NCBI GenBank assembly: GCA_950097015.1
Contig: CATNEN010000001.1
Location: 3,410,001 to 3,474,000, forward strand
DNA length: 64,000 bases
Origin: Macrostomum hystrix
Taxonomy: Eukaryota > Animalia > Platyhelminthes
Direction: 5' to 3'
Shown piece by piece: positions 38,088 to 64,000 of the stretch. A program made the position numbers and the translations under genes. The notes beneath the pieces are model-generated. The model ran no database searches, was not told the DNA's origin, and worked only from the letters and a program-made list of their open reading frames with translations. Numbering within the stretch: the first letter of the stretch is position 1; each line of letters starts with the position of its first letter.

Positions 38088-41000
38088 TCTCTCATCCAAC
38101 TCTCTCATACAAATCTCATCCCACTCTCATCCCACTCTCATCCCACTCTCATCCCTCTCTCATCCCACTCTCAACCCACTCTCTCATCCCACTGTCATCC
38201 CACTCTCACCCCACTCTCTTTTCCCACTCTTATCCCACTCTCTCATCCAACCCTCTCATCCCACTCTCATCCCACTCTCTCATCCCACTCTCTCATCCCA
38301 CTCTCATCCCACTCTCTCATCCCACTCTCTTTTCCCACTCTTATCCCACTGTCATCCCACTCTCTCATCCAACCCTCTCATACAAATCTCATCCCACTCT
38401 CATCCCACTCTCATCCCACTCTCATCCCTCTCTCATCCCACTTTCATCCCACTTTCATCCCACTCTCATCATCCCACTCTCCCATCCCACTCTCTCATCC
38501 CACTCTCTCATCCCACTCTCTTTTCCCACTCTTATCCCACTGTCATCCCACTCTCTCATCCAACCCTCTCATACAAATCTCATCCCACTCTCATCCCACT
38601 CTCATCCCACTCTCATCCCTCTCTCATCCCACTCTCAACCCACTCTCTCATCCCACTGTCATCCCACTCTCACCCCACTCTCTTTTCCCACTCTTATCCC
38701 ACTCTCTCATCCAACCCTCTCATCCCACTCTCATCCCACTCTCATCCCACTCTCATCCCACTCTCATCCCACTCTCATCCCACTCTCATCCCACTCTCAT
38801 CCCACTCTCTCATCCCACTCTCATCCCACTCTCATGACACTCTCATCCCACTCTCATGACACTCTCATGACACTAACGCAAAGGATCAGGGGCAAGAATC
38901 AGAATTCATTTCTAAATTATCCAACTCAAGTTCTCTTTTCCCAACACAGCTCATCCAGACAATCTAATACCACTCTCCCATCCACTCTCATCCCACTCTC
39001 ATCCCAGTCTCATCCCACTCTCATCCCACTCTCATCCCTCTCTCATCCCACTCTCTCATCCCACTCTCATCCCACTCTCTCATCCAACTCTCTCATACAA
39101 ATCTCATCCCACTCTCATCCCACTCTCATCCCACTCTCATCCCTCTCTCATCCCACTCTCATCCCACTCTCATCCCACTGTCATCCCACTCTCACCCCAC
39201 TCTCTTTTCCCACTCTTATCCCACTCTCTCATCCAACCCTCTCATCCCTCTCTCATCCCACTCTCATCCCACTCTCTCATCCCACTCTCATCCCACTCTC
39301 TCATCCCACTCTCTCATCCCACTCTCTCATCCCACTGTCATCCCACTCTCACCCCACTCTCTTTTCCCACTCTTATCCCACTGTCACCCCACTCTCATCC
39401 CTCTCTCATCCCACTTTCATCCCACTTTCATCTCACTCTCATCCCACTCTCACCCCACTCTCTCATCCCACTCTCTCATCCCACTCTCTCATCCCACTGT
39501 CATCCCACTCTCACCCCACTCTCTTTTCCCACTCTTATCCCACTGTCACCCCACTCTCATCCCTCTCTCATCCCACTTTCATCCCACTTTCATCTCACTC
39601 TCATCCAACTCTCAACCACTCTCATCCCTCTCTCATCCCACTTTCATCCCACTCTCATCATCCCACTCTCCCATCCCAATCTCATCATCCCACTCTCCCA
39701 TCCCACTCCATCATCCCACTCTCCCATCCCACTCCATCATCCCACTCTCCCATCCCACTCTCATCAATCCTTCGTGCCATGAGTCATCCGGGAAGCAATG
39801 TGATTGTTGGGCTGGGCTGTGGGATTGAGCATAGACTCATACTCAGCTCTGTTGTGAGATTAGGGCATTAAGCACTGCCAATACAAATGCAAAGGATCAG
39901 GGGCAAGAATCAGAATTCATTTCTAAATTATCCAACTCAAGTTCTCTTTTCCCAACACAGCTCATCCAGACAATCTAATACCACTCTCCCATCCACTCTC
40001 ATCCCACTCTCATCCCAGTCTCATCCCACTCTCATCCCACTCTCATCCCACTCTCATCCCACTCTCATCCCACTCTCATCCCACTCTCATGACACTCTCA
40101 TCCCACTCTCATGACACTCTCATCCCACTCTCATCCCACTCTCATCCCACTCTCATCCCACTCTCATCCCACTCTCATGACACTCTCATCCCACTCTCAT
40201 CCCACTCTCTCATCCAACTCTCTCATACAAATCTCATCCCACTCTCATCCCATTCTCATCCCACTCTCATCCCTCTCTCATCCCACTCTCTCATCCCACT
40301 CTCATCCCATTCTCATCCCACTCTCATCCCACTCTCATCCCACACTCTCATCCCACTCTCATCCCACTCTCATCCCACTCTCATCCCACTCTCATGACAC
40401 TCTCATCCCACTCTCATCCCACTCTCATCCCACTCTCATCCCTCTCTCATCCCACTCTCATCCCTCTCTCATCCCACTCTCATCCCACTCTCATCCCACT
40501 CTCTCATCCAACTCTCTCATACAAATCTCATCCCACTCTCATCCCACTCTCATCCCACTCTCATCCCACACTCTCATCCCACTCTCATCCCACTCTCATC
40601 CCACTCTCATGACACTCTTATCCCACTCTCATCCCACTCTCATCCCACTCTCATCCCTCTCTCATCCCACCCTCATCCCTCTCTCATCCCACTCTCATCC
40701 CACTCTCATCCCACTCTCTCATCCAACTCTCTCATACAAATCTCATCCCACTCTCATCCCACTCTCATCCCACTCTCATCCCTCTCTCATCCCACTCTCA
40801 TCCCACTCTCATCCCACTGTCATCCCACTCTCACCCCACTCTCTTTTCCCACTCTTATCCCACTCTCTCATCCAACCCTCTCATCCCTCTCTCATCCCAC
40901 TCTCATCCCACTCTCTCATCCCACTCTCATCCCACTCTCTCATCCCACTCTCTCATCCCACTCTCTCATCCCACTGTCATCCCACTCTCATCCCACTCTC

Positions 41001-44000
41001 TCATCCCACTCTCATCCCACTCTCTCATCCCACTCTCTCATCCCACTCTCTCATCCCACTGTCACCCCACTCTCATCCCTCTCTCATCCCACTTTCATCC
41101 CACTTTCATCTCACTCTCATCCCACTCTCACCCCACTCTCTCATCCCACTCTCTCATCCCACTCTCTCATCCCACTGTCATCCCACTCTCACCCCACTCT
41201 CTTTTCCCACTCTTATCCCACTGTCACCCCACTCTCATCCCTCTCTCATCCCACTTTCATCCCACTTTCATCTCACTCTCATCCAACTCTCAACCACTCT
41301 CATCCCTCTCTCATCCCACTTTCATCCCACTCTCATCATCCCACTCTCCCATCCCAATCTCATCATCCCACTCTCCCATCCCACTCCATCATCCCACTCT
41401 CCCATCCCACTCTCATCAATCCTTCGTGCCATGAGTCATCCGGGAAGCAATGTGATTGTTGGGCTGGGCTGTGGGATTGAGCATAGACTCATACTCAGCT
41501 CTGTTGTGAGATTAGGGCATTAAGCACTGCCAATACAAATGCAAAGGATCAGGGGCAAGAATCAGAATTCATTTCTAAATTATCCAACTCAAGTTCTCTT
41601 TTCCCAACACAGCTCATCCAGACAATCTAATACCACTCTCCCATCCACTCTCATCCCACTCTCATCCCAGTCTCATCCCACTCTCATCCCACTCTCATCC
41701 CACTCTCATCCCACTCTCATCCCACTCTCATGACACTCTCATCCCACTCTCATGACACTCTCATCCCACTCTCATCCCACTCTCATCCCACTCTCATCCC
41801 ACTCTCATCCCACTCTCATCCCACTCTCATCCCACTCTCATCCCACTCTCATGACACTCTCATCCCACTCTCATCCCACTCTCATCCCACTCTCATCCCA
41901 CTCTCATCCCACTCTCATGACACTCTCATCCCACTCTCATCCCACTCTCTCATCCAACTCTCTCATACAAATCTCATCCCACTCTCATCCCATTCTCATC
42001 CCACTCTCATCCCTCTCTCATCCCACTCTCTCATCCCACTCTCATCCCACTCTCATCCCACTCTCATCCCACTCTCATCCCACACTCTCATCCCACTCTC
42101 ATCCCACTCTCATCCCACTCTCATCCCACTCTCATGACACTCTCATCCCACTCTCATCCCACTCTCATCCCACTCTCATCCCTCTCTCATCCCACTCTCA
42201 TCCCACTCTCATGACACTCTCATCCCTCTCTCATCCCACTCTCATCCCACTCTCATCCCACTCTCTCATCCAACTCTCTCATACAAATCTCATCCCACTC
42301 TCATCCCACTCTCATCCCACTCTCATCCCACACTCTCATCCCACTCTCATCCCACTCTCATCCCACTCTCATGACACTCTTATCCCACTCTCATCCCACT
42401 CTCATCCCACTCTCATCCCTCTCTCATCCCACCCTCATCCCTCTCTCATCCCACTCTCATCCCACTCTTATCCCACTCTATCATCCAACTCTCTCATACA
42501 AATCTCATCCCACTCTCATCCCATTCTCATCCCACTCTCATCCCTCTCTCATCCCACTCTCTCATCCCACTCTCTCATCCCACTCTCATCCCACTCTCAT
42601 CCCACTCTCATCCCACTCTCATCCCACTCTCATCCCACTGTCATCCCACTCTCACCCCACTCTCTTTTCCCACTCTTATCCCACTGTCACCCCACTCTCA
42701 TCCCTCTCTCATCCCACTTTCATCCCACTTTCATCTCAATCTCATCCAACTCTCAACCACTCTCATCCCTCTCTCATCCCACTTTCATCCCACTCTCATC
42801 ATCCCACTCTCCCATCCCAATCTCATCATCCCACTCTCCCATCCCACTCCATCATCCCACTCTCCCATCCCACTCTCATCAATCCTTCGTGCCATGAGTC
42901 ATCCGGGAAGCAATGTGATTGTTGGGCTGGGCTGTGGGATTGAGCATAGACTCATACTCAGCTCTGTTGTGAGATTAGGGCATTAAGCACTGCCAATACA
43001 AATGCAAAGGATCAGGGGCAATAATCAGAATTCATTTCTAAATTATCCAACTCAAGTTCTCTTTTCACAACACAGCTCATCCAGACAATCTAATACCACT
43101 CTCCCATCCACTCTCATCCCACTCTCATCCCAGTCTCATCCCACTCTCATCCCACTCTCATCCCACTCTCATCCCACTCTCATCCCACTCTCATGACACT
43201 CTCATCCCACTCTCATGACACTCTCATCCCACTCTCATCCCACTCTCATCCCACTCTCATCCCACTCTCATCCCACTCTCATGACACTCTCATCCCACTC
43301 TCATCCCACTCTCTCATCCAACTCTCTCATACAAATCTCATCCCACTCTCATCCCATTCTCATCCCACTCTCATCCCTCTCTCATCCCACTCTCTCATCC
43401 CACTCTCATCCCACTCTCATCCCACTCTCATCCCACTCTCATCCCACACTCTCATCCCACTCTCATCCCACTCTCATCCCACTCTCATCCCACTCTCATG
43501 ACACTCTCATCCCACTCTCATCCCACTCTCATCCCACTCTCATCCCTCTCTCATCCCACTCTCATCCCTCTCTCATCCCACTCTCATCCCACTCTCATCC
43601 CACTCTCTCATCCAACTCTCTCATACAAATCTCATCCCACTCTCATCCCACTCTCATCCCACTCTCATCCCACACTCTCATCCCACTCTCATCCCACTCT
43701 CATCCCACTCTCATGACACTCTTATCCCACTCTCATCCCACTCTCATCCCACTCTCATCCCTCTCTCATCCCACCCTCATCCCTCTCTCATCCCACTCTC
43801 ATCCCACTGTCATCCCACTCTCTCATCCAACTCTCTCATACAAATCTCATCCCACTCTCATCCCATTCTCATCCCACTCTCATCCCTCTCTCATCCCACT
43901 CTCTCATCCCACTCTCTCATCCCACTCTCATCCCACTCTCATCCCACTCTCATCCCACTCTCATCCCACTCTCATCCCTCTCTCATCCCACTCTCTCATC

Positions 44001-44452
44001 CCACTCTCATCCCACTCTCATCCCTCTCTCATCCCACTCTCATCCCACTCTCATCCCACTCTCATCCCACTCTCATCCCACTCTCTTTTCCCACTCTTAT
44101 CCCACTGTCATCCCACTGTCATCCCACTCTCTCATCCCACTTTCATCTCACTGTCATCCCTCCCTCATCCCACTTTTATCCGACTCTCATCATCCCACTC
44201 TCCCATCCCACTCCATCATCCCACTCTCCCATCCCACTCCATCATCCCACTCTCCCATCCCACTCTCATCCCACTCCATAATCCCACTCTCCCATCCCAC
44301 TCCATCATCCCACTCTCCCATCCCACTCCATCATCCCACTCTCCCATCCCACTCCATCAATCCTTCGTGCCATGAGTCATCCGGGAAGCAATGTGATTGT
44401 TGGGCTGGGCTTTGGGATTGAGCATAGACTCATACTCAGCTCTGTTGTGAGA
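38088..44452. repeat. Higher-order satellite: 11-bp (ctcatcccact) arrays punctuated by a ~220-bp complex spacer every ~1.5 kb
   Basis: Spacer (caatccttcgtgccatgagtc...gcaaaggatcaggggc...ctaatacc) at ~39765, ~41417 and ~42880, with partial copies at ~38876 and ~44358. Confidence 0.95.
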
Positions 44453-47914: not shown

Positions 47915-48320
47915 TCAGTCTATGGCCGCGGGCTAGCCGGCCTCAGCTCATGCGTTTATCGTGCGCCTAGTCAGGGTGCCCTCATGGTGAGGTGAGCTGG
48001 GCTAGCCGATCGCAGCTCCAGTCTATGGCCGCGGGCTAGCCGGCCCCAGCTCATGCGTTTATTATGCGCCTAGCCAGGGTGCCCTCATGGTGAGGTGAGC
48101 TGGGCTAGCCGATCGCAGCTCATGGGCCCAGCCCATGGGCCCAGGGTGCGCTCCTGGTGTGGGCCTCGGCAGTCTATGGCCGCGGGCTAGCCGGCCCCAG
48201 CTCATGCGTTTATTATGCGCCTAGCCAGGGTGCCCTCATGGTGAGGTGAGCTGGGCTAGCCGATCGCAGCTCATGAGCCCAGCCCATGGGCCCAGGGTGC
48301 GCTCCTGGTGTGGGCCTCGG
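47915..48320. repeat. GC-rich tandem triplication (units of ~103 and ~150 bp)
   Basis: cagtctatggccgcgggctagccgg recurs at ~47916, ~48019 and ~48169. Confidence 0.88.
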
Positions 48321-48371
48321 ATATGGGATAGGAAGGTGACGGGGGGGAGGAGGAGGGGGAGAGGTTGCCCA

Positions 48372-48625
48372 TGAGGGCGGATAGCTCAGTCAGTAAGGTG
48401 TCGGACTCTGGATCAGATGGTCCTGGGTTCGACTCCCGACCTAGTCTAGAACTATTCGTGCAGCCCTTGGCAAGCTGCTTTGCCCTGATGTGCACACAGT
48501 CTACTCAGCTGCAGATGAGTACCGACATTTCGTCGGGTAATAATAATTCTGGCTGGCGTGGAATAAAGCAGTTCTGTGCGGCAATTCTGTGGGGTTCGGA
48601 TGCTGCCGATATGTTTGGAAAAATA
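48372..48625 (+). mobile_element. tRNA-derived SINE, family C
   Basis: Head gggcggatagctcagtcagtaaggtgtcggactctggatcagatggtcctgggttcgactccc (A box and perfect B box), then cccttggcaag and ctactcagctgcagatgagtacc core-like motifs. Confidence 0.75.
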
Positions 48626-48651
48626 AATTCTTTAAGAGTTTTCTTAATTTA

Positions 48652-49612
48652 AGAGTTTTTCAAAACATATAGGCTATCCTACTGTATGTGATTCCTTTGG
48701 TGCTTCGAATGTACTGTATAGTGCTGATATTGATGTAAATCAGCGTAAAACCGCTTTTTTTCTTACTCAGCCGGATTAAGAAATGAGTAGGCTTATATGA
48801 TGTTCTTGTTGTTCTGCAAAACATATAATCATTAATTTAAATAAAAAATGAGTCGAACCAACGACCCGCAGTTATCAGGCTGACGTGCTACCAGTTTCAC
48901 CACTTGACATTGCCCATATACAACGAAGAATTACTATTTATTAGTATATTCTTTCGTTCGAATACTTTTTCAGAGTTTTTCAAAACATATAGGCTATTCT
49001 ATTGTATGTGATTCCTTTGGTGCTTCGAGTGTACTGTATAGTGCTGATATTGATGTAAATCAGCGTAAAACCGCTTTTTTTCTTACTCAGCCGGATTAAG
49101 AAATGAGTAGGCTTATATGATGTTCTTGTTGTTCTGCAAAACATATAATCATTAATTTAAATAAAAAATGAGTCGAACCAACGACCCGCAGTTGTCAGGC
49201 TGACGTGCTACCAGTTAAACCACTTGACATTGCCAGTTTACAACGAAGAATTACTATTTATAAGTATATTCTTTCGTTCGAATACTTTTTCAGAGTTTTT
49301 CAAAACATATAGGCTATCCTACTGTATGTGATTCCTTTGGTGCTTCGAGTGTACTGTATAGTGCTGATATTTATGTAAATCAGCGTAAAACCGCTTTTTT
49401 TCTTACTCAGCCAGATTAAGAAATGAGTAGGCTTATATGATGTTCTTGTTGTTCTGCAAAACATATAATCATTAATTTAAATAAAAAATGAGTCGAACCA
49501 ACGACCCGCAGTTATCAGGCTGACGTGCTACCAGTTTCACCACATGACATTGGCCAAATACAACGAAGAATTACTATTTATTAGTATATATTCTTTCGTT
49601 CGAATACTTTTT
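48652..49612. repeat. Three tandem 320-bp units, each containing a minus-strand tRNA-like segment and an AT-rich hairpin
   Basis: caaaacatataggct recurs at 48661, 48981 and 49301. Confidence 0.95.
48843..48915 (-). ncRNA. tRNA-like Pol III unit (copies also at ~49163-49235 and ~49483-49555); lacks the 3' acceptor strand
   Basis: The minus strand reads gtggtgaaactggtagcacgtcagcctgataactgcgggtcgttggttcgactcatttttt: A box, anticodon-like loop, B box GGTTCGACTC, then T6. Confidence 0.5.
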
Positions 49613-51588
49613 TGGCTGCAGGCTGCAGCTTGTGCTTTCTTATTTTAAGCAATGGCCATCGTAGCGATCAAATTCGCAACGCAATATTAGCAACGCAAGC
49701 AAATATATCGCGAGCTAGCGAATCGCTCCATTATCTAACGACGGGTCCAGCAGGTCCCCAAATTTTATCTGCAAAGCTTCAAAAACCAAAAGGGTGAACG
49801 TCAATATTACAAATTTATTACAAACTCAGCAAAAGTCAAAATTATTAGCACCCGTAACGAAAGTCATCGATTTATCGTTGCACCAAACATTCTACTTATT
49901 TTTGTCATTGCATGTAATCCATAAAGTTTTAAATAAAGACCAGCAAGGCAAAAATCATTATTTTTAAAGCATAAAAGTAACTTAAAAGAAAGGTTGAAGC
50001 GAAAATAGTTCGCTAAAAGATTTTTTTAAACACATACTGCATAAAAACGGCAAAACAGCGTTTAAATTTTGTAGGGTACGAAGTGCAATGCCTCACACCA
50101 GTATCTAAATGTTTTACTTTGTTTAGAGTTACATAAAGTTTCCGGAACATTTAACCTTTTCGACAGAAATCAACATGATAAATAATCGACCAATTTATAA
50201 ATCTAATTGATGCAAAGTCATTGCATTCTGTTGCAAAAGCAGTATAATCGCACGAGTTCAACCTACTGAAACATCGATTTAGTTAATTCATCTACAAATA
50301 TTATATATTTTTAATAAAAGTGTCTGAGCTTTCGTGTTCTGCTACAAAGTAGGGAAACCGTAAGACTTTCTGGTATATTAGGTCTTAATTTAATAATTCT
50401 CGAAAAACCAAGGTATTCCAAATAATTAGCTACGAAACACATTATTTTCCTTTCTTGAAGATCGGCTCGATATTACCCGCAACTTACGTATGTAAACCGT
50501 AACGTACTCGTAGCGTTTGAGTTTAAAAAAATAAAATCGTAATAAAGGTATAGGCTACTTAATACTGCTTTGAAAAAACAAATAATTATGTTCTTAGACA
50601 TATACATAAAGAAGGCTCTGCAGATTTTTTTGGCGCGGTTTAAATAATTTCAGATGCATGTTCGTCGGAGTTGTCCGCCATGTTGTTTTTAGCTTTTTCA
50701 AATTTTAATTTTGAACTGAATTTTAATTAATTTAGTAATTTAATTTTCTCTTTGAATTCAACTGAAAGTGAAAGACAGGTAAATCGGGACAAAAAAGTAC
50801 AAGATTGTACCAATTGCAATCATTCCACATTACTGTTACTTTTTCTAGATTATTGCCACTTTGGTAGCTAATTTCGTTCTTCGTAAATCGTAATTAAGGT
50901 TAAAAAGGAAAATATTTGTATTGTTTACTTCACTCTTCACTTAGTTTTGGACAAATCAGAGTCATTTGCACAAGGTAATTAAAAACTCGATAAATGTCTA
51001 AACAATGTCAGTTGGAAAATAACATATGTCGCTATATGGCAAAATTACATGGTTAATATGATGTAATATAATACTCTAGATAGCTAGTATTGAATAGGAA
51101 ATATTATCTGACTATCTTTGGCAGGTTAGAAACTAGTTAACTCGGCAGTAAACCAGTACTATAGCTAGTGCCTATAAGCATTTACTCATATTTAGTTAAC
51201 ATTGAAGATGGGTTAATCCAAAATTTTGTTAGAGGTTGTGCCAGTGTGTATTAAATTAGAAACAGTTGTCCGACTATAATATTCACTTTTATTTATTAAG
51301 TTCTGCTGCTAGTTTCTTTGCATTTCTTGCTTAACAGTGTACCAAGCTCTGCAACTTTTTATGAAGCAACAGTCACTAATTTCATTTGGTCTTTAGACCT
51401 AGCCTCCTAGCCTACTTCCAGAGTCAAAAAGGTGGCTCTGTGTGCCAGAAAGAAATTATAAACAATGTAATAAGTGACATGCACCACCAATATAAGTAAC
51501 TTTAACATTGAGTCAAGTAGGCTTTGGTAAATAGTAAATAAAGTAAATAGTTAATAGGGCAAGATCTCAAAAAAACTAATGCATACTC

Positions 51589-52022
51589 GGCAATGTTTTA
51601 CTTCCGTTCGTTATATTATTTTTTCGTTTGAATTGACATGGCTTTGCCGTGACTTGACACTTGGATCTATGTCTATGGCAAAATCTGGCAAATATGGGGG
51701 AACAGGAAGCTTAGGCACAGAAATTCTGCAGCTGAAGATTTTGTGAAGGCCAAGCTGCGTCAAATGCATGGCACGAATGCTGCTCTATTCGAAAGCCACC
51801 TCAAAGAATTCTTATGGCGCTGTCTATACCCCAAGAATAGCTTCGGTGCCCTCCTCTACTGGATTAGGCACTTACCCGGTTTGAAAGAAGAAAGACTGAC
51901 CAAGACTTTTCAGAACTGTCTGATCAAACTACAGACTTATTGTTACCGTTAAACTTGTTTTTGTCGTTATCTGTCATTTGCAAATGAAAAAATAATATAA
52001 CGAACGGAAGTAGAACATTGCC
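51589..52022 (+). mobile_element. Non-autonomous Merlin (IS1016/ISXO2-like) DNA transposon
   Basis: TIRs ggcaatgtttacttccgttcgttatattatttt / aaaataatataacgaacggaagtagaacattgcc. Perfect 8-bp TSD gcatactc (51581-51588 and 52023-52030). The internal remnant KLRQMHGTNAALFESHLKEFLWR matches the Merlin transposase C-terminus. Confidence 0.88.
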
Positions 52023-52628
52023 GCATACTCTTTGCACATAAAGGCTTCTTTCCAGTGGACCTTGAACTTAAGATCAATATTTATATCGTAAATAGTGAAA
52101 TTGAAATCTTGAAATCAATCACTTGAGAAGGTATTCGACTGAGATTAGTGGCAATCCATTGGAGGATTAGAGAAGTCCATGCTGGTATCAGTATCAGACA
52201 GGCTGATCATCTAGGCAGAATAGCTGCAGCTGGACACTGCAGCATGACAGTCTGGCCCTGGCAAAGCTGAGCAAACTGCCACCCCAAGTCTGCCAATCTT
52301 TGTCACATTCCATGGAGTCCATGGGTGGCAGTAATGTGTTAATTTGTGAGAGTGAGAAAAAGGGATTTGTGTGCAAATTTTTAAGTAAATGTTCAATTCT
52401 TTATATTCAAGCAAGTGTATAGAAATGACGCCCAAGTGCAGGTCAGCAATCTCCACAGACTGTAGTTACATGGCCACAATACTTGTGGGAATATATGTTG
52501 AATATAAGTGCTATGATTTCATTATAGAATATATAAAACTTTATAGTATTAAATAGAAAACAGTTGTCTGTCTACAATATTAAATACTGTAAACCAATGA
52601 TTATAAATTACTTTCTCATTTCCAGACA

Positions 52629-55076
52629 ATGTATCGCGGCATCGAACTGAAGCGTGTTGTCAAAGCTACACTGCAAACTGGCTGTCGTGGGCGACCCAGA
52701 AAGATTAAGACAATCATTAGCGGCCGAAATCGAGGCTCAACATCTCGGCGTCCTGTGTCTGAAACTACTCCTGTTCCAGTGGAAGCTAGCACCGAGAATG
52801 ATGTCGGTATGCCTGAGTCTTTTGCTCCTACAGTAGAAGATGTTGAATGGGTAGATTTTGACAGCTTTGCTGAGAAATACAGAGGTAGTTACGAGAAGCA
52901 TTTTCTCTTAAATCTGTGTTCCTCTTGCTATGAGCACGAAGGTGTATATCGATGTGTTACTTGTCGACTTAGCTTATGTGCCAGCTGTAAGAATGAGACG
53001 CATAAAAAGTTTTCAGCCCACAAGTTTCTCATATGGAATAAGGAGAGTCTAATGTTTCAGGAACTGGATGCTACTCACGATGCTTTTGAAATGTTTTGCT
53101 GCGCTTCTAGTAAATTGAATCTGAATGTCTGTGCGGCTACAAAAGTTGACCTTATAGATCTGGCTGGAAGCGTAAAGGTCATTTTTATTACCTGCGACTC
53201 CTGTGATCTTATTGGTGCACTCCTTTCTCAAGGGTTCTTCCCTTGTTGCGAAGGGTCAAAGCCTGATTCAGATGGGTATGCATTCTTTTCTTTTACCTTT
53301 TTGTCCCTGCTAGACAGTTTGTGTATGACTGGGCAGTTGCCTGTTCACAGAGCGGTCAGTACACTGCTCATTGGGCCAACTCTGGGACAAGGTACATATA
53401 ATTTGGCTCTTGTAAAAAGCACTTATCAACGCATTCAACGACATGATGTTTTGCTGCGGTTTCGCCACCTGCAAATGGCCTCAGCAAAATGGCCAAATAA
53501 TTGTCTTCTCTGTCCAGATAATCACGCTGTGCGCAAAACTGTTGTCTGTGCAGATGCTCTATTTGGTTGGCAGCGCTTTAAAGCCAGGGGGCGTACACAA
53601 CTGGAAATACCATCAGATGGTCGTCCATTACCTACGCCGCTTGTCTATGTAGATATTAAAGCGGATGTGCCAAAAAATCGAGCAGAGGAACAGAATTGTC
53701 CTAATTGGAAGGCCGGTGCTCATGAACCATTAAGCCGTGAGCAGAGACATGATGTCACGGGTTTCTTTGGATTATTCTGTCGTCACAATCGCCTTTTGTG
53801 TGGCTCAAATATCACAACTGGTGGAGAAAAGTTTTGCTACCTGGAACAGTGCCTTGAACACTTTCTGCGAAACGTCAAAGTGTCTAAGGAATTACTTGTC
53901 GTATATGACGTGGGTAAGTTTATTATTATTTTATAAAATGCATACAATCTATGAAATACTGTTGCTTGTGTACAGTTATATGACAACATGACTTACTCTT
54001 TATCCCAATTCACAGGCTGTCGCGTATCCAGCCGGGTTAAATCCGCTATTGCGAAGTCTGGTGCCAACATTCAAGCGAGTAGCTGTGCAATAAACGCTTT
54101 TCATGCTCTTGGTCACCTGCCCAGTTGTCAAAAAAAGTTTTCTGTTCGCGTTACTCCAGGCGCAGGTCTATGCGATGGAGAGAATACTGAGCGAGCCTGG
54201 TCTCAACTCAGGCCGTTCGGTAAGTTTTTAAAGTACATGCGGAAAGACCGACGAGCACAATACATGGCGCATATTCTATACTTCTTTAATGCACAACAGC
54301 TTCTTAGCGCTTCTGGGTGGTTTACACAACGTATTAAGCTTATGGTAGGTGCGGGAAAAAGCATTCTAAGTGAACTAAAAGAGCTACAAAGCCAGTCTGC
54401 GATTTTGCAGCACTCGGGGGTCCGAAATGACAGTCTGGTCATCTCTGAGGATGAAATTTTGGATTTAGGCTCCCAATGGTATGAAGATTCCCTCCGAGTA
54501 GCTGTACACAACTCGGAAGATGATATCCTATGTGAGCTACGCGCTCTTGCAGTGCACAGAGATCATTGGAGTAAACAGGTTGGTAAGTCAGTTGGCCAAA
54601 GTCAAACCAGAATGTGCTTGCGAAAGGTTAAAAGTTATGCATCCGACATGAAAAAACTCTACGCTCGTCTTCCAATTGAAGACAGAGCTTCTTTCGATGA
54701 ATATAAAAAACCGCGTAGTGCGAAATATGAACATTTGTCTGGAACCGACCTTTCCATCCGATTTCGTCAGCGGGCTATAGACGTCAGTAACAAATATAAA
54801 CGCCTAAAAGAAGAAGCGCATATTATTTCAGATGAGTGGGTTGACCTTCAGGTTAATTTGCAGAGCCTCTGTGATGACTTAGCGAATCAGCCGGGCTTAG
54901 CCGCTCAATTTCGGGAATTGTTTAGAAGACTGCTTGAAGATGTTGCAAGTAAAAGCGTGACTGATGCTGTAAAATATCTTCTTGCGAATAAATTCTCCCT
55001 CAGCACACTGAGTCAGAGCGCTAATGAAGCGGTTGCTTCAGAAGATTCGGAGTCTTCTGATAGCGACTCCGATTAA
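52629..55076 (+). CDS. KDZ (Kyakuja-Dileera-Zisupton) transposase with AT-hook and CxC cysteine cluster; exons 52629-53913 and 54016-55076 (~781 aa)
   Basis: RGRPRK AT-hook; CSSC..YRCVTC..LCASC...H...H..W and G.V....CDSC....LL.QGFFP CxC region; CLLCP..VCADALF; GFFGLFCRH...GEKFCY; VYDVG|C restored by a phase-1 GT-AG intron; NAFHALGH..CQ.......PGAGLCDGENTERAWSQL. Confidence 0.9.
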
Positions 55077-55148
55077 GTATCCAACCAGTGTACTGATGAT
55101 TCCACCGTTACTTGTGTTTTTAATTGAAGTCAAGCGCTGCCTTGTAAA

Positions 55149-55826
55149 GTCACTCTGCACCTACTTTTGTGTGGGTGCTGTGAAGCGTTAAGTTTAAGAT
55201 CGCTAAAATTAATACCATTAAGCCCAAAATTTGGACACATTTCTTTCAACTAGCAAATTTTTTGCAGGTCACTTTGCACATGCAATACAATGTGCTGTGA
55301 AGCGTTAAGTTTAAGAACGCTAAAATTAATACCAGTAAGCCCAAAGTTTGGACACATATTTCTTTCAACTAGCAAAATATTTACAGGTCACTTTGCACAT
55401 GCAATTCAATGTGCTGTGAAGCGCTACATTTTAAAGCGCTATGAGCCCATGTGTCAGCCTTCTCGCGGCGGACTCGTTGAGCGCGAATAAAATCTGCTAA
55501 TTACCGTGCGCTGCCAATCTTACCGTGCATGTTTGCACTATCCAGCGGACTGGCAGTGTACTTACGTTAGCTGTTTTTATTCGTGGGACTAATGACACTA
55601 TTAAATTCGTTCATTTATCAGCTTTTCCGTTCAATTCCGTTTTATTATTATTATATAGCTCACAGTTTCATTGTCTGTCAAATAAATGGAGGGGCTCCTA
55701 AACAGTGTTTCTCGTTCTTATTTTTTCATTGCTTGCCGTGCCTGATAAACATGTTTTCCTTTTTTAGCATTTACATACTTGCGCCTATATACGTCACCGA
55801 TTTCAGCGAAACGCAGGCAACTTAAA
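55149..55826. repeat. Intergenic spacer repeat R, copy 1 (with an extra degenerate ~120-bp subunit)
   Basis: Near-identical to 56993-57553 and 58410-58852. Confidence 0.95.
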
Positions 55827-55874
55827 TAAACTCTTTAAAAAATCAAAATTCAGATTTCAAATTCAAAAGACAGC

Positions 55875-56887
55875 ATGCCCACTGATAAGCTCGATTGTCC
55901 GTTATGTCTTCCTGGTTTATCTGCCTATTCGGCCAGACCTGACAGGCTCGCTCTGCATATTGAAACGCATCATCCAAACGCGAAAGGGAAGACGGAATGC
56001 ATCATTCAATATCTACGTTGGTCGAAGAAGGCCGATGCAAAATTGTGCCAGCTATGCGATACATTCTATGTACATTTGCGGCAGCACTATAAGCTGATTC
56101 ACACCATCGAATTCCGGCGACTTAACACTTTGCTGACAGGTCAACCAGCCATGCGACTCGCGCGAAAGCGTGGTGTTAAACGTTTTGGTGAAATATTCTG
56201 GTGGTTTACTTCCAATCAGCCGTTGCCAAACTATCCGTCCTCAGATGGCGACTGTGTTGGAAAGCTGGAAGAACAAAGGTAATTAATTTGTGAAGGGCAT
56301 GTCACGATCTCATTTAAAGCTTAGTTACGTAAAATGCAAACTGCCTGTGCCATCTGTATTTTCTAAGTCTTGTCAACACTTCCCACAGGCACTGCGAATC
56401 TTCTGCTGGCCAACGATCATGCATAGATGTCTACAGGAAAAGTTCAAATTTCGTCCCAGCCAAGGTTTTAGTGAAGCCTTCTGGTGAGAAGGGTCTCGGT
56501 ATTTTTGCTGGTGAACTAATTAGAGCTGATTCATTCGTGTGCTTCTATGGTGGCACCGTAATATCTAGAAAACAAGGACTCGCCAGAGAGCAGGAGAGGG
56601 CATCTAAAGGCGAGTCACCTTGTTTTGCGTTTTTCTTTTTTTATGGCTCCCAATCGCTTTGCGAAGATGCTACTGATAGTTTTTCCCTTGGTCGGTTTAT
56701 TAATCACAGTCGGTTGACTCCAAATCTAATGCCAAGGGCGATACCACCATGTAAAGAAATCGGACGGAACGTCTGCAGGATCGCTTTTTTTGCTATTCGG
56801 GACATTCTAGAAGGGCAAGAATTGCTCTTCGATTATTCTGAAACTGACGAAGAGTGTCTAAAGAGGTTTCCCTGGCTGCAATCTTAA
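55875..56887 (+). CDS. Double C2H2-like zinc finger plus SETD8/PR-Set7(KMT5A)-like SET methyltransferase; exons 55875-56278 and 56389-56887 (300 aa)
   Basis: CPLC..HIETHH and CQLC..HYKLIH. A phase-2 intron (GTAATT...CCACAG) joins in frame to KGLGIFA..FVCFYGG..RE....CFAFFF.Y....CEDAT...LGRFINHSR..PNL...IAFFAIRDILEGQELLFDY......FPWL. The PWL tail is characteristic of SETD8. Confidence 0.88.
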
Positions 56888-56992
56888 AAGTTCAAAAAAT
56901 TGTACCAACTAGTCACTGCTAATCATTTTGAATTTGTTGCACATGCGTCAGACAAATTTCTTCAAAACTTGTCGCATAAAACATTACAGCAG

Positions 56993-57553
56993 GTCACTCT
57001 GCACCTACTTTTGTGTGGGTGCTGTGAAGCGTTAAGTTTAAGAACGCTAAAATTAATACCAGTAAGCCCAAAGTTTGGACACATATTTCTTTCAACTAGC
57101 AAAATATTTACAGGTCACTTTGCACATGCAATTCAATGTGCTGTGAAGCGCTACATTTTAAAGCGCTATGAGCCCATGTGTCAGCCTTCTCGCGGCGGAC
57201 TCGTTGAGCGCGAATAAAATCTGCTAATTACCGTGCTCTGCCAATCTTACCGTGCATGTTTGCACTATCCAGCGGACTGGCAGTGTACTTACGTTAGCTG
57301 TTTTTATTCGTGGGACTAATGACACTATTAAATTCGTTCATTTATCAGCTTTTCCGTTCAATTCCGTTTTATTATTATTATATAGCTCACAGTTTCATTG
57401 TCTGTCAAATAAATGGAGGGGCTCCTAAACAGTGTTTCTCGTTCTTATTTTTTCATTGCTTGCCGTGCTTGATAAACATGTTTTCCTTTTTTAGCATTTA
57501 CATACTTGTGCCTATATACGTCACCGATTTCAGCGAAACGCAGGCAACTTAAA
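56993..57553. repeat. Intergenic spacer repeat R, copy 2
   Basis: Near-identical to copy 1. Confidence 0.95.
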
Positions 57554-57594
57554 AAAAACTTTAAACTTCAAACTGTAAACACACAAAACTCATC

Positions 57595-58329
57595 ATGCCC
57601 AACAAACACGCGAAAGTGTCCTGTCTTGTCTGTTCCAATTGGACTGGTCGATCCTACATGCTTTGGAGGCATTGCGAGAAAAGGCACCCCGCTCTGGAGG
57701 ATGACAGGATTCAGGCGATGATTGACTTCGCGAAGGCGACTTCAAAAGCGAAGCCGGTGTGTCTCTGTCCGATATGCGGGGCTCTGATTTCTCACCAAAG
57801 AGCGCATTTTAAGAGATGCCACGTACCTGAATATGGCTCTACATACCGCCGCAAAGCCCTCTCGGGTCGTGCGGCTGTCCTGAAATTACGCGAATCAGGT
57901 TCGCGGCGTGTAGCAGAACTTCACAAACTTGCTACAGAAGAAAAGCATCCACTCCAATACATGGAACTTGAGTTCGCTGCTAGTCAGCTATCTATTCTGG
58001 TTGAGATGTACAAGGATATCGGCGAGGTACAAATTACATCAGCAACTAGCCAAGAGACGAGTGCGTCAACAAAACTTCCCGCAGAACAGCAGCAGCAGGA
58101 AGAGCGCTGCAACTCTTCTGAAGGTGCTCCTAAAAGTCCTAAACCTACGCCAGAAACTCATCGAGTTCCAGCTAAAATCTGTCGAAACCCATTACCATTT
58201 GTGATTCCTCCAAGAGTCCCTTATTGCGTCAAACCCTTACCGCCTATTGTCTTGCGTAAATCTGCTACCAACTTGACCCGATATAACCCGAAAATTCCCA
58301 CCTCGTCTCCCATAAAAATTGCTACCTGA
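57595..58329 (+). CDS. Double zinc-finger protein with a Pro/Ser-rich C-terminus; paralog of the 55875 gene N-terminus
   Basis: CLVC..HCEKRH, CPIC..HFKRCH, and LSGRAAVLKLRESGSRRVAEL aligning with LTGQPAMRLARKRGVKRFGEI. Confidence 0.75.
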   Translation: MPNKHAKVSCLVCSNWTGRSYMLWRHCEKRHPALEDDRIQAMIDFAKATSKAKPVCLCPICGALISHQRAHFKRCHVPEYGSTYRRKALSGRAAVLKLRESGSRRVAELHKLATEEKHPLQYMELEFAASQLSILVEMYKDIGEVQITSATSQETSASTKLPAEQQQQEERCNSSEGAPKSPKPTPETHRVPAKICRNPLPFVIPPRVPYCVKPLPPIVLRKSATNLTRYNPKIPTSSPIKIAT

Positions 58330-58409
58330 GGTCTTCCTGTTGGAACAAAATACCATACCACCCCTATCCCATGGAAAAATTGGTATATCGACAGAGCCAA
58401 TTACAGCAA

Positions 58410-58852
58410 GTCACTCTGCACCTACTTTTGTGTGGGTGCTGTGAAGCGTTAAGTTTAAGAACGCTAAAATTAATACCAGTGAGGCCAAATTTTGGATACA
58501 ATTCATTCAACTAGCAAAATATTTACAGATCACTTTGCACATGCAATTCAATGTGCTGTGAAGCGCTACGTTTTAAAGCGCTATGAGCCCATGTGTCAGC
58601 CTTCTCGCGGCGGACTCGTTGAGCGCGAATAAAATCTGCTAATTACCGTGCGCTGCCAATCTTACCGTGCATGTTTGCACTATCCAGCGGACTGGCAGTG
58701 TACTTACGTTAGCTGTTTTTATTCGTGGGACTAATGACACTATTAAATTCGTTCATTTATCAGCTTTTCCGTTCAATTCCGTTTTATTATTATTATATAG
58801 CTCACAGTTTCATTGTCTGTCAAATAAATGGAGGGGCTCCTAAACAGTGTTT
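58410..58852. repeat. Intergenic spacer repeat R, copy 3 (3' end diverged)
   Basis: Near-identical to copies 1 and 2 up to ...ctcctaaacagtgtttc. Confidence 0.95.
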
Positions 58853-59126
58853 CGCGTTTTCGTTTTTTAATTGCTTGTTTTTTAGATGCGCTTTCTTTCT
58901 GCTCATTAGTTGGCTGTGCAGGGAACAACTAGGACAAATGGAGATAGATGTGCATTTGAGAATAGACTGCCTGCTTTATACAATTATATGCATGGCAGAT
59001 CAATGTCCTTATTAGCGTTTATATATTAGCGTTCACGCCTTCATTTAGGGTCTAGCTTTAATTGTCAACGTTTCAAACTTCAATCTCGAATAAATTTCAG
59101 GCCAGCATCACTTCCATTGAAAGTTG

Positions 59127-59660
59127 ATGACACCTCCCAACATTCACGCCGCGATTACGTGTCTTCAGTGCCACTAGAGTGGCAGGGCATCAGGTTTTAA
59201 ACAGCATTGCCGCGGAGCTCATCCGGACCTATCTGAAAGGCGAATCGACGCCAACCTTCGCTACTGTCGCCTACAACATAAGCTGGAGTTGTCTCCTATT
59301 TTTTATCTCTGTCCATATTGCTCTACTATCACTTCGGGATTCGATATGCACATGCTCATTCACAATCGCGGGAGAAGAGGAGGCGATAGAATCATCATCA
59401 CGACTGAGGACTTCAAAGCTGCTAACCTTGCTGCATTAAGTTTCATTGACGAGCTACGCAACATCGCTGTTGGTGGTAAAACTCCTGCCAACGAAATATC
59501 GCCGGCTCTTCCAGCAGCTGGTCAACCTACGAGTGCTCATTCAGTTGATTTAAATCCACAGGTGCCTGGGGCCCAAGACTACAGTTGTAATCAACGCTCC
59601 GCTGCAGCTTTAAGCTACAATTCTGATGTCAACAGGATGACGTGCGCGATGTCAACATGA
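59127..59660 (+). pseudogene. Third double-zinc-finger paralog with an in-frame TAG at codon 17 (59175-59177)
   Basis: MTPPNIHAAITCLQCH*SGRASGFKQHCRGAHPDLSERRIDANLRY...LCPYCSTITSGFDMHMLIH aligns with CLVCSNWTGRSYMLWRHCEKRHPALEDDRIQAM...LCPICGALISHQRAHFKRCH. Confidence 0.72.
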
Positions 59661-60079
59661 TGACGTGCGCGAGCATTCAACACAATGGAAATGACGATCC
59701 ATACAATTTTTTAGGCGGTGTTTCTGGTCTTTCAACCGTTGTGACCAATCTTTGAAGAAGCATCTTGCTAATGATATTTTAGCTTTTATAACTATTTGCA
59801 CAATTAAAGGTACGTGGCTACGCACTTCTACGCCTTTAGCCTTGTCTAATGTCATTTTTCAATTCCCTCCAGTCGTCCAAGGCGTTTTGTTGTTATGCGA
59901 ACTCGGCCAATCTGACTTCATAATTGCTTCATATGCGTTCATATGCATACAAGTGTGAATGCTCATATGCGTGTGTACACCTTTCGTGTCTGCTTGCCTG
60001 CAATCCTACTTGTGCATGTATTTGACTTACCTATAGTCATTACACTTAGCTAGAGTAATTTAGCCCAGGTGTGGCAACA

Positions 60080-60716
60080 ATGGTCAGAGGAGAGCTAGAG
60101 TCAAACTGTTCAGAATATGTTCCGATGACTAAATTATTCAGTTTTCCCTGGTAGTCATGCAATTTCTTGGATGGTCAGAGGAGAGCTAGAGTCAAACTGT
60201 TCAGAATATGTTCCGATGACTAAATTATTCAGTTTTCCCTGGTAGTCATGCAATTTCTTGGATGGTCAGAGGAGAGCTAGAGTCAAACTGTTCAGAATAT
60301 GTTCCGATGACTAAATTATTCAGTTTTCCCTGGTAGTCATGCAATTTCTTGGATGGTCAGAGGAGAGCTAGAGTCAAACTGTTCAGAATATGTTCCGATG
60401 ACTAAATTATTCAGTTTTCCCTGGTAGTCATGCAATTTCTTGGATGGTCAGAGGAGAGCTAGAGTCAAACTGTTCAGAATATGTTCCGATGACTAAATTA
60501 TTCAGTTTTCCCTGGTAGTCATGCAATTTCTTGGATGGTCAGAGGAGAGCTAGAGTCAAACTGTTCAGAATATGTTCCGATGACTAAATTATTCAGTTTT
60601 CCCTGGTAGTCATGCAATTTCTTGGATGGTCAGAGGAGAGCTAGAGTCAAACTGTTCAGAATATGTTCCGATGACTAAATTATTCAGTTTTCCCTGGTAG
60701 TCATGCAATTTCTTCA
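60080..60716. repeat. 91-bp tandem repeat, 7 essentially identical copies
   Basis: atggtcagaggagagctagag recurs at 60080, 60171, 60262 and so on to 60626. Confidence 0.96.
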
Positions 60717-61085
60717 ATGGTCGTGCTCCCTTGCAAACGAGCAGCGGAGTGAGAGGAGAGAGTTCTGAAGTTCTGAACGCGTTTGACAATGATAAAATAT
60801 CAAACTCTAATACCTGCTTTCTTTATGCTAACTGTGCATGCACTGTATGTGTTTTTACGTGAGGGTCTGTACTTTGTTCAATTAATGTTTCTGTCTAACT
60901 AGGACTTTTCACCAATTCTTTTCCGTGTCAATCTTCAGGGAAAATACATAAGCTAATTTATCAAAACATATCAGCGCATCTCATTGGCAAAAATTGTGCC
61001 GCACAGGCACGGCATAGGTGACCTGCTGCAAGGTATACTGACTAAAATTATTATTATGTTATTATTATTACTTCTTTCTTGGAAT

Positions 61086-61318
61086 CACAGGGTGAGGTGA
61101 CAGAGAAGAGGGTGAGGTGACAGAGGAGAGAGTGGGGTGACAGAGAGGAGAGAGTGAGGGCACAGGAGAAAGTGAGGGCACAGAGGAGAAAGTGAGGGCA
61201 CAGAGGAGAAAGTGAGGGCACAGGAGAAAGTGAGGGCACAGAGTGGAGAAAGTGAGGGCACAAAGGAGAAAGTGAGGGCACAGAGTGGAGAAAGTGAGGG
61301 CACAGAGAGGAGAAAGTT
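61086..61318. repeat. ~20-bp purine-rich minisatellite (gagggcacagaggagaaagt)
   Basis: Tandem copies. Confidence 0.9.
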
Positions 61319-61429
61319 AACTTTGATGAATTTCGATGGGATTTGATTCCCCGTATTCTGGGATAGACGTAGAAGCGATCCCTGTCGAAATCCGGGGTCA
61401 ATAAGTAAGCCTGCGGCGTCGCATCACAC

Positions 61430-63950
61430 AGACTATACTTAATTATTACTATTGTAGCCAGATTTATAAACTTGAACTGGAGCTTGTGGGCACCTATTGC
61501 CGTTTAGGAAAATTCAAGAAACCAACAATTGCAGTGCCACGCTTGGCCTCAACTACATGATTTTCGCACTACAAAGACTATACTTAATTACTATTGTAGC
61601 CCAATTTATAAACTTGAACTGGAGCTTGTGGGCACCTATTGCCGTTTAGGAAAATTCAAGAAACCAACAATTGGTGCCACGCTTGACCTCAACTACATGA
61701 TTTTCGCACTACAAAGACTATACTTAATTACTATTGTAGCCAGATTTATAAACTTGAACTGGAGCTTGTGGGCACCTATTGCCGTTTAGGAAAATTCAAG
61801 AAACCAACAATTGCAGTGCCACGCTTGGCCTCAACTACATGATTTTCGCACTACAAAGACTATACTTAATTACTATTGTAGCCAGATTTATAAACTTGAA
61901 CTGGAGCTTGTGGGCACCTATTGCCGTTTAGGAAAATTCAAGAAACCAGTAATTGGTGCCACGCTTGGCCTCAACTACATGATTTTCGCACTACAAAGAC
62001 TATACTTAATTACTATTGTAGCCCAATTTATAAACTTGAACTGGAGCTTGTGGGCACCTATTGCCGTTTAGGAAAATTCAAGAAACCAGTAATTGGTGCC
62101 ACGCTTGGCCTCAACTACATGATTTTCGCACTACAAAGACTATACTTAATTACTATTGTAGCCCGATTTATAAACTTGAACTGGAGCTTGTGGGCACCTA
62201 TTGCCGTTTAGGAAAATTCAAGAAACCAACAATTGCAGTGCCACGCTTGGCCTCAACTACATGATTTTCGCACTACAAAGACTATACTTAATTACTATTG
62301 TAGCCAGATTTATAAACTTGAACTGGAGCTTGTGGGCACCTATTGCCGTTTAGGAAAATTCAAGAAACCAACAATTGCAGTGCCACGCTTGGCCTCAACT
62401 ACATGATTTTCGCACTACAAAGACTATACTTAATTACTATTGTAGCCAGATTTATAAACTTGAACTGGAGCTTGTGGGCACCTATTGCCGTTTAGGAAAA
62501 TTCAAGAAACCAACAATTGCAGTGCCACGCTTGGCCTCAACTACATGATTTTCGCACTACAAAGACTATACTTAATTACTATTGTAGCCAGATTTATAAA
62601 CTTGAACTGGAGCTTGTGGGCACCTATTGCCGTTTAGGAAAATTCAAGAAACCAACAATTGCAGTGCCACGCTTGGCCTCAACTACATGATTTTCGCACT
62701 ACAAAGACTATACTTAATTACTATTGTAGCCAGATTTATAAACTTGAACTGGAGCTTGTGGGCACCTATTGCCGTTTAGGAAAATTCAAGAAACCAACAA
62801 TTGCAGTGCCACGCTTGGCCTCAACTACATGATTTTCGCACTACAAAGACTATACTTAATTACTATTGTAGCCAGATTTATAAACTTGAACTGGAGCTTG
62901 TGGGCACCTATTGCCGTTTAGGAAAATTCAAGAAACCAACAATTGCAGTGCCACGCTTGGCCTCAACTACATGATTTTCGCACTACAAAGACTATACTTA
63001 ATTACTATTGTAGCCAGATTTATAAACTTGAACTGGAGCTTGTGGGCACCTATTGCCGTTTAGGAAAATTCAAGAAACCAACAATTGCAGTGCCACGCTT
63101 GGCCTCAACTACATGATTTTCGCACTACAAAGACTATACTTAATTACTATTGTAGCCAGATTTATAAACTTGAACTGGAGCTTGTGGGCACCTATTGCCG
63201 TTTAGGAAAATTCAAGAAACCAACAATTGGTGCCACGCTTGGCCTCAACTACATGATTTTCGCACTACAAAGACTATACTTAATTACTATTGTAGCCAGA
63301 TTTATAAACTTGAACTGGAGCTTGTGGGCACCTATTGCCGTTTAGGAAAATTCAAGAAACCAACAATTGGTGCCACGCTTGGCCTCAACTACATGATTTT
63401 CGCACTACAAAGACTATACTTAATTACTATTGTAGCCAGATTTATAAACTTGAACTGGAGCTTGTGGGCACCTATTGCCGTTTAGGAAAATTCAAGAAAC
63501 CAACAATTGCAGTGCCACGCTTGGCCTCAACTACATGATTTTCGCACTACAAAGACTATACTTAATTACTATTGTAGCCAGATTTATAAACTTGAACTGG
63601 AGCTTGTGGGCACCTATTGCCGTTTAGGAAAATTCAAGAAACCAACAATTGCAGTGCCACGCTTGGCCTCAACTACATGATTTTCGCACTACAAAGACTA
63701 TACTTAATTACTATTGTAGCCAGATTTATAAACTTGAACTGGAGCTTGTGGGCACCTATTGCCGTTTAGGAAAATTCAAGAAACCAACAATTGGTGCCAC
63801 GCTTGGCCTCAACTACATGATTTTCGCACTACAAAGACTATACTTAATTACTATTGTAGCCAGATTTATAAACTTGAACTGGAGCTTGTGGGCACCTATT
63901 GCCGTTTAGGAAAATTCAAGAAACCAACAATTGGTGCCACGCTTGGCCTT
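61430..63950. repeat. 140/142-bp tandem satellite, ~18 copies
   Basis: Near-identical units in two length variants (aattggtgccac vs aattgcagtgccac). Confidence 0.97.
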
Positions 63951-64000
63951 AAATGCATGCGTTTCGCAGCCAGTTTCCCAGTTTCCCCAGTTTCTCCAGT

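Follow-up and report, generated by a model that had tools for sequence, protein, structure and literature searches.

The stretch of Macrostomum hystrix DNA analyzed here (64,000 nt, hereafter the window) contains a gene for a KDZ transposase followed by three zinc-finger (ZnF) genes, all on the same strand between positions 52629 and 59660, and it raises the question of why the spacers of a gene array should be alike where its genes are not. The initial annotation had described four co-oriented genes separated by three near-identical copies of one repeat, R, and the list of open reading frames (ORFs), a repeat finder, and a three-way spacer alignment gave the same picture. It had also described the ZnF ORFs as strongly diverged, with unrelated C-termini; they share 27-38% identity and have different tails. 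The array is the multi-gene core of a giant animal KDZ transposon, and this core is organized and expressed like a spliced leader (SL) operon with homogenized spacers. As a whole, the explanation that we consider best, and probable, combines a KDZ transposon, R as an intergenic module with an SL acceptor, conversion among R copies, and deletion by recombination between them. The core contains the following features:

52629..53912, plus strand: KDZ transposase exon 1, 428 codons (Pfam; RNA splice joint)
53913..54014, plus strand: KDZ intron, 102 nt, GT..AG (missing from the RNA contigs of runs X4 and X5)
54015..55076, plus strand: KDZ transposase exon 2, 353 codons and stop (Pfam; RNA)
about 55147..55839, plus strand: R1, with 119-bp sub-repeats, AATAAA at 55486, a polypyrimidine tract, and a TTTCAG acceptor (repeat finding, alignment)
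55875..56276, plus strand: ZnF-SET exon 1, paired C2H2-like zinc-finger domain (RNA, alignment)
56277..56386, plus strand: ZnF-SET intron, 110 nt, GT..AG (missing from the RNA contigs)
56387..56887, plus strand: ZnF-SET exon 2, SET domain (Pfam, structure comparison)
about 56993..57565, plus strand: R2, with an acceptor motif at 57526-57541, AG at 57532-57533 (alignment)
57595..58329, plus strand: ZnF-Pro-rich (ZnF-Pro) gene, 244 amino acids, one exon (ORF, RNA, alignment)
about 58408..58877, plus strand: R3, sharing the common 444-bp core and divergent after it
59094..59100, plus strand: SL acceptor of the third ZnF gene, TTTCAG, AG at 59099-59100, with the SL joined before 59100
59127..59660, plus strand: third ZnF gene, 177 amino acids (ORF, RNA)

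The array lies inside an element whose left part reaches the end of the window.

48170..64000, plus strand: left 15.8 kb of the giant KDZ transposon, with a sharp left border, continuing beyond the window end
48170..48205, plus strand: left terminal inverted repeat (TIR), beginning CAGTCTATGGCCGCGG..., found by comparing the left end with the reverse complement of the right end

The left boundary at 48170 was sharp in six copies compared, and their flanks were all different. The window holds no inverted counterpart of the left terminus; the right end lies beyond it. The window copy is interrupted at C1:3485787 by a long terminal repeat (LTR) element; a complete copy, 31,350 bp long, was found at C26:1249519-1280868, and its right end was set by direct comparison of the copies on contigs C26 and C25. 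The element ends in 5'-CA...TG-3' (CAGTCT... and ...AGGTG), has an imperfect TIR of ~36 bp, and is flanked by target-site duplications (TSDs) of 7-8 bp, namely GTGGCGG at the C26 copy and CTATAGGC at the C25 copy. Kyakuja elements have 7-bp TSDs with CA..TG ends, and Zisupton elements have 8-bp TSDs (PMC12730594); the termini and TSDs found here fit KDZ DNA transposons. A search of the worm's own genome identified about 20 copies of the transposase gene, and four copies on four contigs were 99.8-100% identical across the 7.9 kb compared, which indicates that the family was mobile recently. The earlier suggestion of a cargo-carrying KDZ transposon, whose ends might be defined by aligning copies, is thus borne out by the ends and TSDs of the C26 and C25 copies and by the copy number: the stretch represents the core, where the genes lie, of a ~31-kb, Kyakuja-like cut-and-paste KDZ transposon that was mobile recently.

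The transposase gene was recognized by Pfam PF18758, which matched exon 1 (38.6 bits, profile positions 3-125) and exon 2 (59.9 bits, profile positions 125-214) above the cut-off of 26.6 bits; the two halves of the domain become contiguous after removal of the RNA-supported intron, and the spliced protein has 781 amino acids. Exon 1 also encodes a B-box-like Cys cluster (E 2.8e-4), and of the CxC cysteine clusters that lie N-terminal to the catalytic domain in KDZ transposases, CxC1 gave E 0.035 (14.7 bits); both are below cut-off. The KDZ and ZnF-SET proteins were searched exon by exon. Protein database searches, whose length limits leave out full-length kin, returned one Logan match for each KDZ exon and no match for ZnF-Pro. 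Immediately 5' of the transposase ATG, at 52615-52631, lies an acceptor-like stretch, CATTTCCAG; the mRNA of the transposase, too, may receive the SL, or an upstream exon may be present.

The ZnF and SET ORFs of the second gene form one gene, joined by the RNA-supported 110-nt intron and encoding a protein of 300 amino acids. The Pfam SET domain was detected within 56471-56887 (59.1 bits, cut-off 22.4), the nearest solved structures to the SET exon were 4ldg_A (E 2.9e-19) and SETD8/KMT5A (E 1e-14), and the translation keeps the SET motifs FINHSR (NHS) and ELLFDY (ELxFDY). The ZnF-SET protein is probably an active SETD8-like methyltransferase. The N-terminal domain of ZnF-SET is 27% identical to that of ZnF-Pro over 117 amino acids (E 5e-9), ZnF-Pro and the third gene share 36-38%, and the Cys/His pairs are conserved in an alignment of all three. 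The three N-terminal domains are true but distant, ancient paralogues, and their C-terminal ends differ, consisting of a SETD8-like SET domain, a proline-rich tail, and a short tail, respectively. Such proteins would act in DNA targeting or chromatin marking; a search of the Atlas gave only weak C2H2-like leads.

The third ZnF gene had been taken for a pseudogene. A premature TAG does occur at 59175-59177 in the window copy, and also in the third gene of the copy at C1:19179263. The gene is intact in at least five other copies, and the RNA has G at 59176 (a TGG codon) in runs X5, X1, and X2, so the pseudogene label does not hold for the family. Copies C26, C25, and C7 are without 59145-59634 of this gene.

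R begins with 119-bp sub-repeats, variable in number, at 71, 106, and 79 bp after the preceding stop codons. The starts and the earlier divergence of R3 agree with the initial annotation, which put the 3' limits of R1 and R2 at 40-50 bp before the following ATG; measured here, R1 and R2 stop 30-36 bp short of it, and the homology of R3 ends about 250 bp before its own. Along the 444-bp core a single base separates R1 from R2, and R3 departs from them at 13-14. Throughout the genome R was always found next to this KDZ gene, save one isolated fragment of 116 bp, as expected from the claim that R is linked to KDZ and is not a common dispersed repeat. The AATAAA in the middle of R is the sole canonical one seen after the upstream genes, and we infer that the middle of R supplies their poly(A) signal; in the proposed mechanism it would serve the gene upstream of each R.

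How these genes are expressed was read from RNA, and here the evidence consists of assembled contigs of small runs (chiefly X4 and X5), not raw reads. The X4 and X5 contigs do derive from RNA, as two GT..AG introns are gone from them. Loose letters at the 5' ends of contigs, ...CGAAGACTCAATTTATTGCAT, match the 3' part of the 35-nt SL of M. lignano. In X4 and X5 the SL is joined directly before 55806, at the TTTCAG of the 3' end of R1 (AG 55805-55806). A second junction uses the corresponding R site of a deletion copy at C1:18287796, where R adjoins position 57667 within ZnF-Pro, and the contig in which R is joined to 57667 has six of the six private letters of that copy, indicating that the deletion copy is real and expressed. 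SL junctions were seen in two runs. The acceptor reported for Macrostomum is [T/C]TNCAG, which TTTCAG fits (PMC8629364). Whatever sequence follows R, even a 5'-truncated gene, is therefore served by its acceptor; for R2, use of the acceptor was demonstrated in the deletion copy and not directly in the window copy. The proposal that R acts as an expression unit is supported in this form, in that its 3' end holds a host SL acceptor seen in RNA contigs. R is transcribed, and the TTTCAG at its 3' end takes the host SL onto the downstream mRNA.

The SL itself ends in AUG. On the mRNA of the third gene this AUG opens a 9-codon upstream ORF (59101-59130) whose stop overlaps the main start (UGAUG), and on the ZnF-SET and ZnF-Pro mRNAs it is out of frame with the main ATG.

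The distances from stop codon to acceptor are 730, 646, and 771 nt. In Macrostomum, genes are assigned to an operon when they lie on the same strand, less than 1 kb apart, with the downstream genes SL-spliced (PMC8629364). As the four genes have the same orientation, spacing below 1 kb, and an SL on the downstream genes, they form an operon-like unit as defined for this genus. We infer in addition that they would be transcribed from one promoter as a single polycistronic precursor. The depth of contigs over R (46-51) was close to the depths of the three upstream genes added together (about 46-48), and, crude as contig depths are, this suggests read-through from the upstream genes into R.

Apart from the reliance on assembled contigs, several observations weigh against this reading. 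No RNA contig bridging two cistrons was seen, the contigs breaking because R is repeated; they end 29 nt into each R, which reflects a k-mer break at the repeat and not a poly(A) site. The interval 55400-55799, just upstream of the acceptor (in R1 and R2), is without contig coverage in these runs. The acceptor of the third gene lies 223 bp beyond the R homology, so that the shared core of R is not itself the acceptor. The spacers are 650-770 nt long, as against a mode of roughly 100 nt in Macrostomum operons. Finally, R holds TATA-like stretches that might be promoters.

This last point leads to the strongest of the alternatives, in which R is a self-contained promoter plus terminator, each gene starts inside R, the SL trims a short outron, and no polycistronic precursor is made. 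CCAAT- and TATA-like stretches occur in R at 55515-55521, 55650-55658, and 55786-55792; RNA covers the third gene 5-10 times as deeply as the transposase, which separate promoters would account for more easily; and the many SL-spliced genes outside operons in M. lignano (PMC8629364) likewise fit a promoter for each gene. Yet coverage by contigs sets in at the first bases of R, ahead of every TATA-like site, with one contig running through the unspliced acceptor into the third gene (R3 coverage 58530-59129), and the depth over R given above behaves as if transcripts ran into it. We regard separate promoters in R as unlikely, though far from negligible, and prefer R as an intergenic SL-acceptor module within a longer transcript.

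The second part of the question is why R is so uniform. Within the window element R1 and R2 differ at 1 of 444 positions, whereas R copies at the same position in the window element and in the element at C1:3573701 differ at 6-7. Four sites (55317, 55327, 55359, and 55680) carry letters peculiar to the element, the same in R at all three positions, and only five position-specific sites were found, all at the divergence edge of R3. In some R3 copies the 5' part is of the R1 type, extra 119-bp unit included; R2 of one copy and a hybrid R of another share a variant bearing a 15-bp insert; and the conversion tracts are patchy. Between elements, R differs by 1.4-3.2% and the flanking genes by 0.4-0.6%. 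These results indicate that the R copies evolve in concert through conversion and unequal exchange, not through constraint. Conversion and unequal exchange between direct repeats homogenize R, and the ZnF genes are too diverged for conversion; a conserved spacer beside diverged coding sequence follows from this, and no capture of cassettes is needed.

Purifying selection on regulatory sequence would be another way to keep R alike, and R does have a demonstrated RNA-processing site. We consider this improbable, as constraint would not make R differ more between elements than the flanking genes do, and near-identity within an element combined with element-specific letters is the signature of conversion.

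Concerted evolution of direct repeats also bears on gene content, which had been expected to vary among copies and was found to do so, with three, two, or one ZnF unit present. Counts from own-genome searches and copy alignments gave the following structures:

six copies (window, C26, C25, C7, C1:3.575 Mb, and C1:17.61 Mb): the full order of transposase, R, ZnF-SET, R, ZnF-Pro, R, and third ZnF gene
three copies: without ZnF-SET
one copy: without ZnF-Pro
seven or eight copies: transposase, R, and third ZnF gene only

Every copy holds a subset of the same three genes in unchanged order, at each junction stands a hybrid R that agrees with one expected partner in its 5' part and with the other in its 3' part, and the junctions fall at varying points inside 450-560 bp of homology. 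Ordered subsets with hybrid R junctions imply loss by homologous recombination between R copies, and the variation in gene content is of this origin; in the mechanism proposed here, such recombination would delete whole units and leave copies with three, two, or one ZnF gene. Against an unqualified reading of this kind, the older copies with a single R, which are 5-6% diverged, might represent the ancestral state instead of having arisen by deletion.

The initial annotation had compared the array with an integron, R being a recombination site for gaining and swapping effector genes. The number of R-flanked units does differ between copies, the acceptor of R drives whatever lies behind it, even a 5'-truncated gene, and M. 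lignano has proteins in which this ZnF domain is joined either to a SET or to an SP-RING effector. Nevertheless, only three unit types in constant order occur among about 20 copies, in which no foreign or duplicated units were found, and the junctions lie at varying points in long homology. No site-specific recombinase was identified among the scanned ORFs of the element besides the KDZ transposase, and no KDZ match was found within 10 kb of the distant ZnF-domain ORFs of this genome, an example of which is a single-copy 407-amino-acid ZnF-SET ORF on C7. The integron-like array was rejected on the lack of a site-specific recombinase and of any foreign cassette, together with the same gene subsets and order throughout, and we regard it as very improbable; the part of the earlier claim that concerned gaining and swapping genes falls with it. 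The weakest alternative, in which misassembly produced the repeat pattern or the variable copies, draws on the repeat-rich nature of the region and is hardly credible given four near-identical full copies on four contigs with distinct flanks and TSDs, an RNA contig from independent runs that reproduces the deletion-copy junction with its six private letters, and an R (~0.6 kb) far shorter than long reads.

The origin of the ZnF genes was approached with a profile of the ZnF domain. Its top match was a 300-amino-acid ZnF-SET protein of M. lignano (four accessions, PAA66912.1 and three identical entries), 61% identical in the SET exon; it also found a 409-amino-acid ZnF-SET protein and a ZnF-PINIT-SP-RING protein (a PIAS-like SUMO ligase; PAA51352.1 and others) of the same species. 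The paired ZnF domain thus stands at the head of several chromatin-type effectors in the genus, and this suggests that ZnF-SET is a host gene captured by the element. A second KDZ family, at 45% identity (loci L051-L060), has neither a ZnF nor a SET gene within 1.5 kb.

A broader proposal may be built on this, in which the transposon made its own SL operon: R would be a portable intercistronic module with the poly(A) signal and the outron that carries the SL acceptor, so that transcription of the element would express any ORF behind it; a ZnF-SET gene captured from the host would have multiplied into a family of ZnF effectors; and exchange between R copies would tune gene number. We offer it tentatively, with less than even confidence. 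If it is true, the element would, judging by the searched literature, be the first animal example of an SL-resolved operon carried by a transposon; neither a transposon-borne SL operon nor KDZ elements in Macrostomum were described there.

Several known systems resemble the element in part. The KDZ transposons with TET/JBP in fungi (PMC12730594) have the same KDZ domain, CA...TG ends, 7-8-bp TSDs, and a chromatin-related gene alongside the transposase. Unlike those fungal Kyakuja/Zisupton elements, the present one lives in a flatworm, is about 31 kb long, and combines ZnF-SET and two ZnF paralogues with homogenized spacers and SL trans-splicing. The SL operons of M. lignano (Ustyantsev and Berezikov 2021, PMC8629364) and of nematodes are likewise same-stranded, with genes less than 1 kb apart and the SL added at [T/C]TNCAG. 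In contrast to them, our array sits inside a mobile element, has 650-770-nt copies of one repeat as spacers, and its single precursor RNA is putative. Ribosomal DNA spacers, and LTR-LTR recombination to solo LTRs, also involve direct repeats that are homogenized or lose the intervening segment and leave a hybrid repeat; in the present DNA transposon the repeats are intergenic modules in its interior, and what recombination removes is single genes. Integron arrays share the co-oriented genes, the recurring element between them, the variable number of units, and perhaps expression from one upstream promoter, whereas no integrase or attC-type recombination operates here, the cassettes are neither diverse nor captured, and only homologous deletion occurs. 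In En/Spm (CACTA), a large DNA transposon similarly joins a transposase with a DNA-binding helper (TnpA), a role that the ZnF proteins would likely play; in contrast, the present proteins come from separate genes and not from alternative splice forms, and the helpers are C2H2-like, one with a SET domain.

KDZ elements that carry chromatin genes are mainly known in fungi. To our knowledge, multi-gene expression by eukaryotic DNA transposons has seldom been worked out. The present element appears to use the SL machinery of its host, the repeated spacer giving the acceptor by which several proteins are obtained from a compact same-strand array. Additionally, the family is a clean natural example of concerted evolution and of recombinational gene loss inside a mobile element, with about 20 dated copies and RNA that can be assigned to single copies. 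M. lignano, a related species, is tractable for transgenesis, and R could be useful as an intercistronic module for multi-gene constructs in flatworms.

Other features of the element concern its copies and its flanks.

51588..52023, no strand assigned: nested miniature inverted-repeat transposable element (MITE), 436 bp, with 43-bp inverted ends (repeat finding)
59989..63968, no strand assigned: internal satellites with 91-bp, about 20-bp, and 142-bp units, the unit numbers varying among copies

Some copies of the element lack the MITE, whose presence marks a sub-lineage; outside the element it is dispersed through the genome in many copies. Family copies and SET-like relatives lie mostly on contig C1, with single copies on C5, C7, C25, and C26. 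The C26, C25, and C7 copies are ~100% identical to the window copy in the left 11 kb; in the right arm they show 90-96% identity with rearrangements over ~8 kb and then 99% (L061 and L062 compared with C26:1266189-1278627). The element copies are thus mosaics of sub-families.

Three left flanks (L063, L067, and L071, of the C26, C7, and C1:19.19 Mb copies) represent independent insertions within ~10 bp of one another in one host repeat (...CCGCCACTCTGCGGGCCAAATTTTA...), one of the three in the opposite orientation, which hints at a target preference. Directly left of the window copy, at 47916-48169, are 1.7 extra tandem copies (103 + 151 bp) of the first 151 bp of the element. They are missing from the five copies examined (C26, C25, C7, C1:18.69 Mb, and C1:19.19 Mb) and may have been left behind by another insertion or by aberrant repair.

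The left subterminal region at 48380-48460 contains a tRNA-like stretch (GGATAGCTCAGTCAGT...GGACTCTGGATC), in which, as in the rest of the left arm, ARAGORN called no tRNA; the 256-bp piece that surrounds it occurs scattered over other contigs at 98%. Rfam gave no family match across 48000-64000. Upstream of the element, long tandem arrays occupy 38089-44358 and 30000-31620, with an 11-bp unit (about 546 copies, with strong GC skew) and a 19-bp unit.

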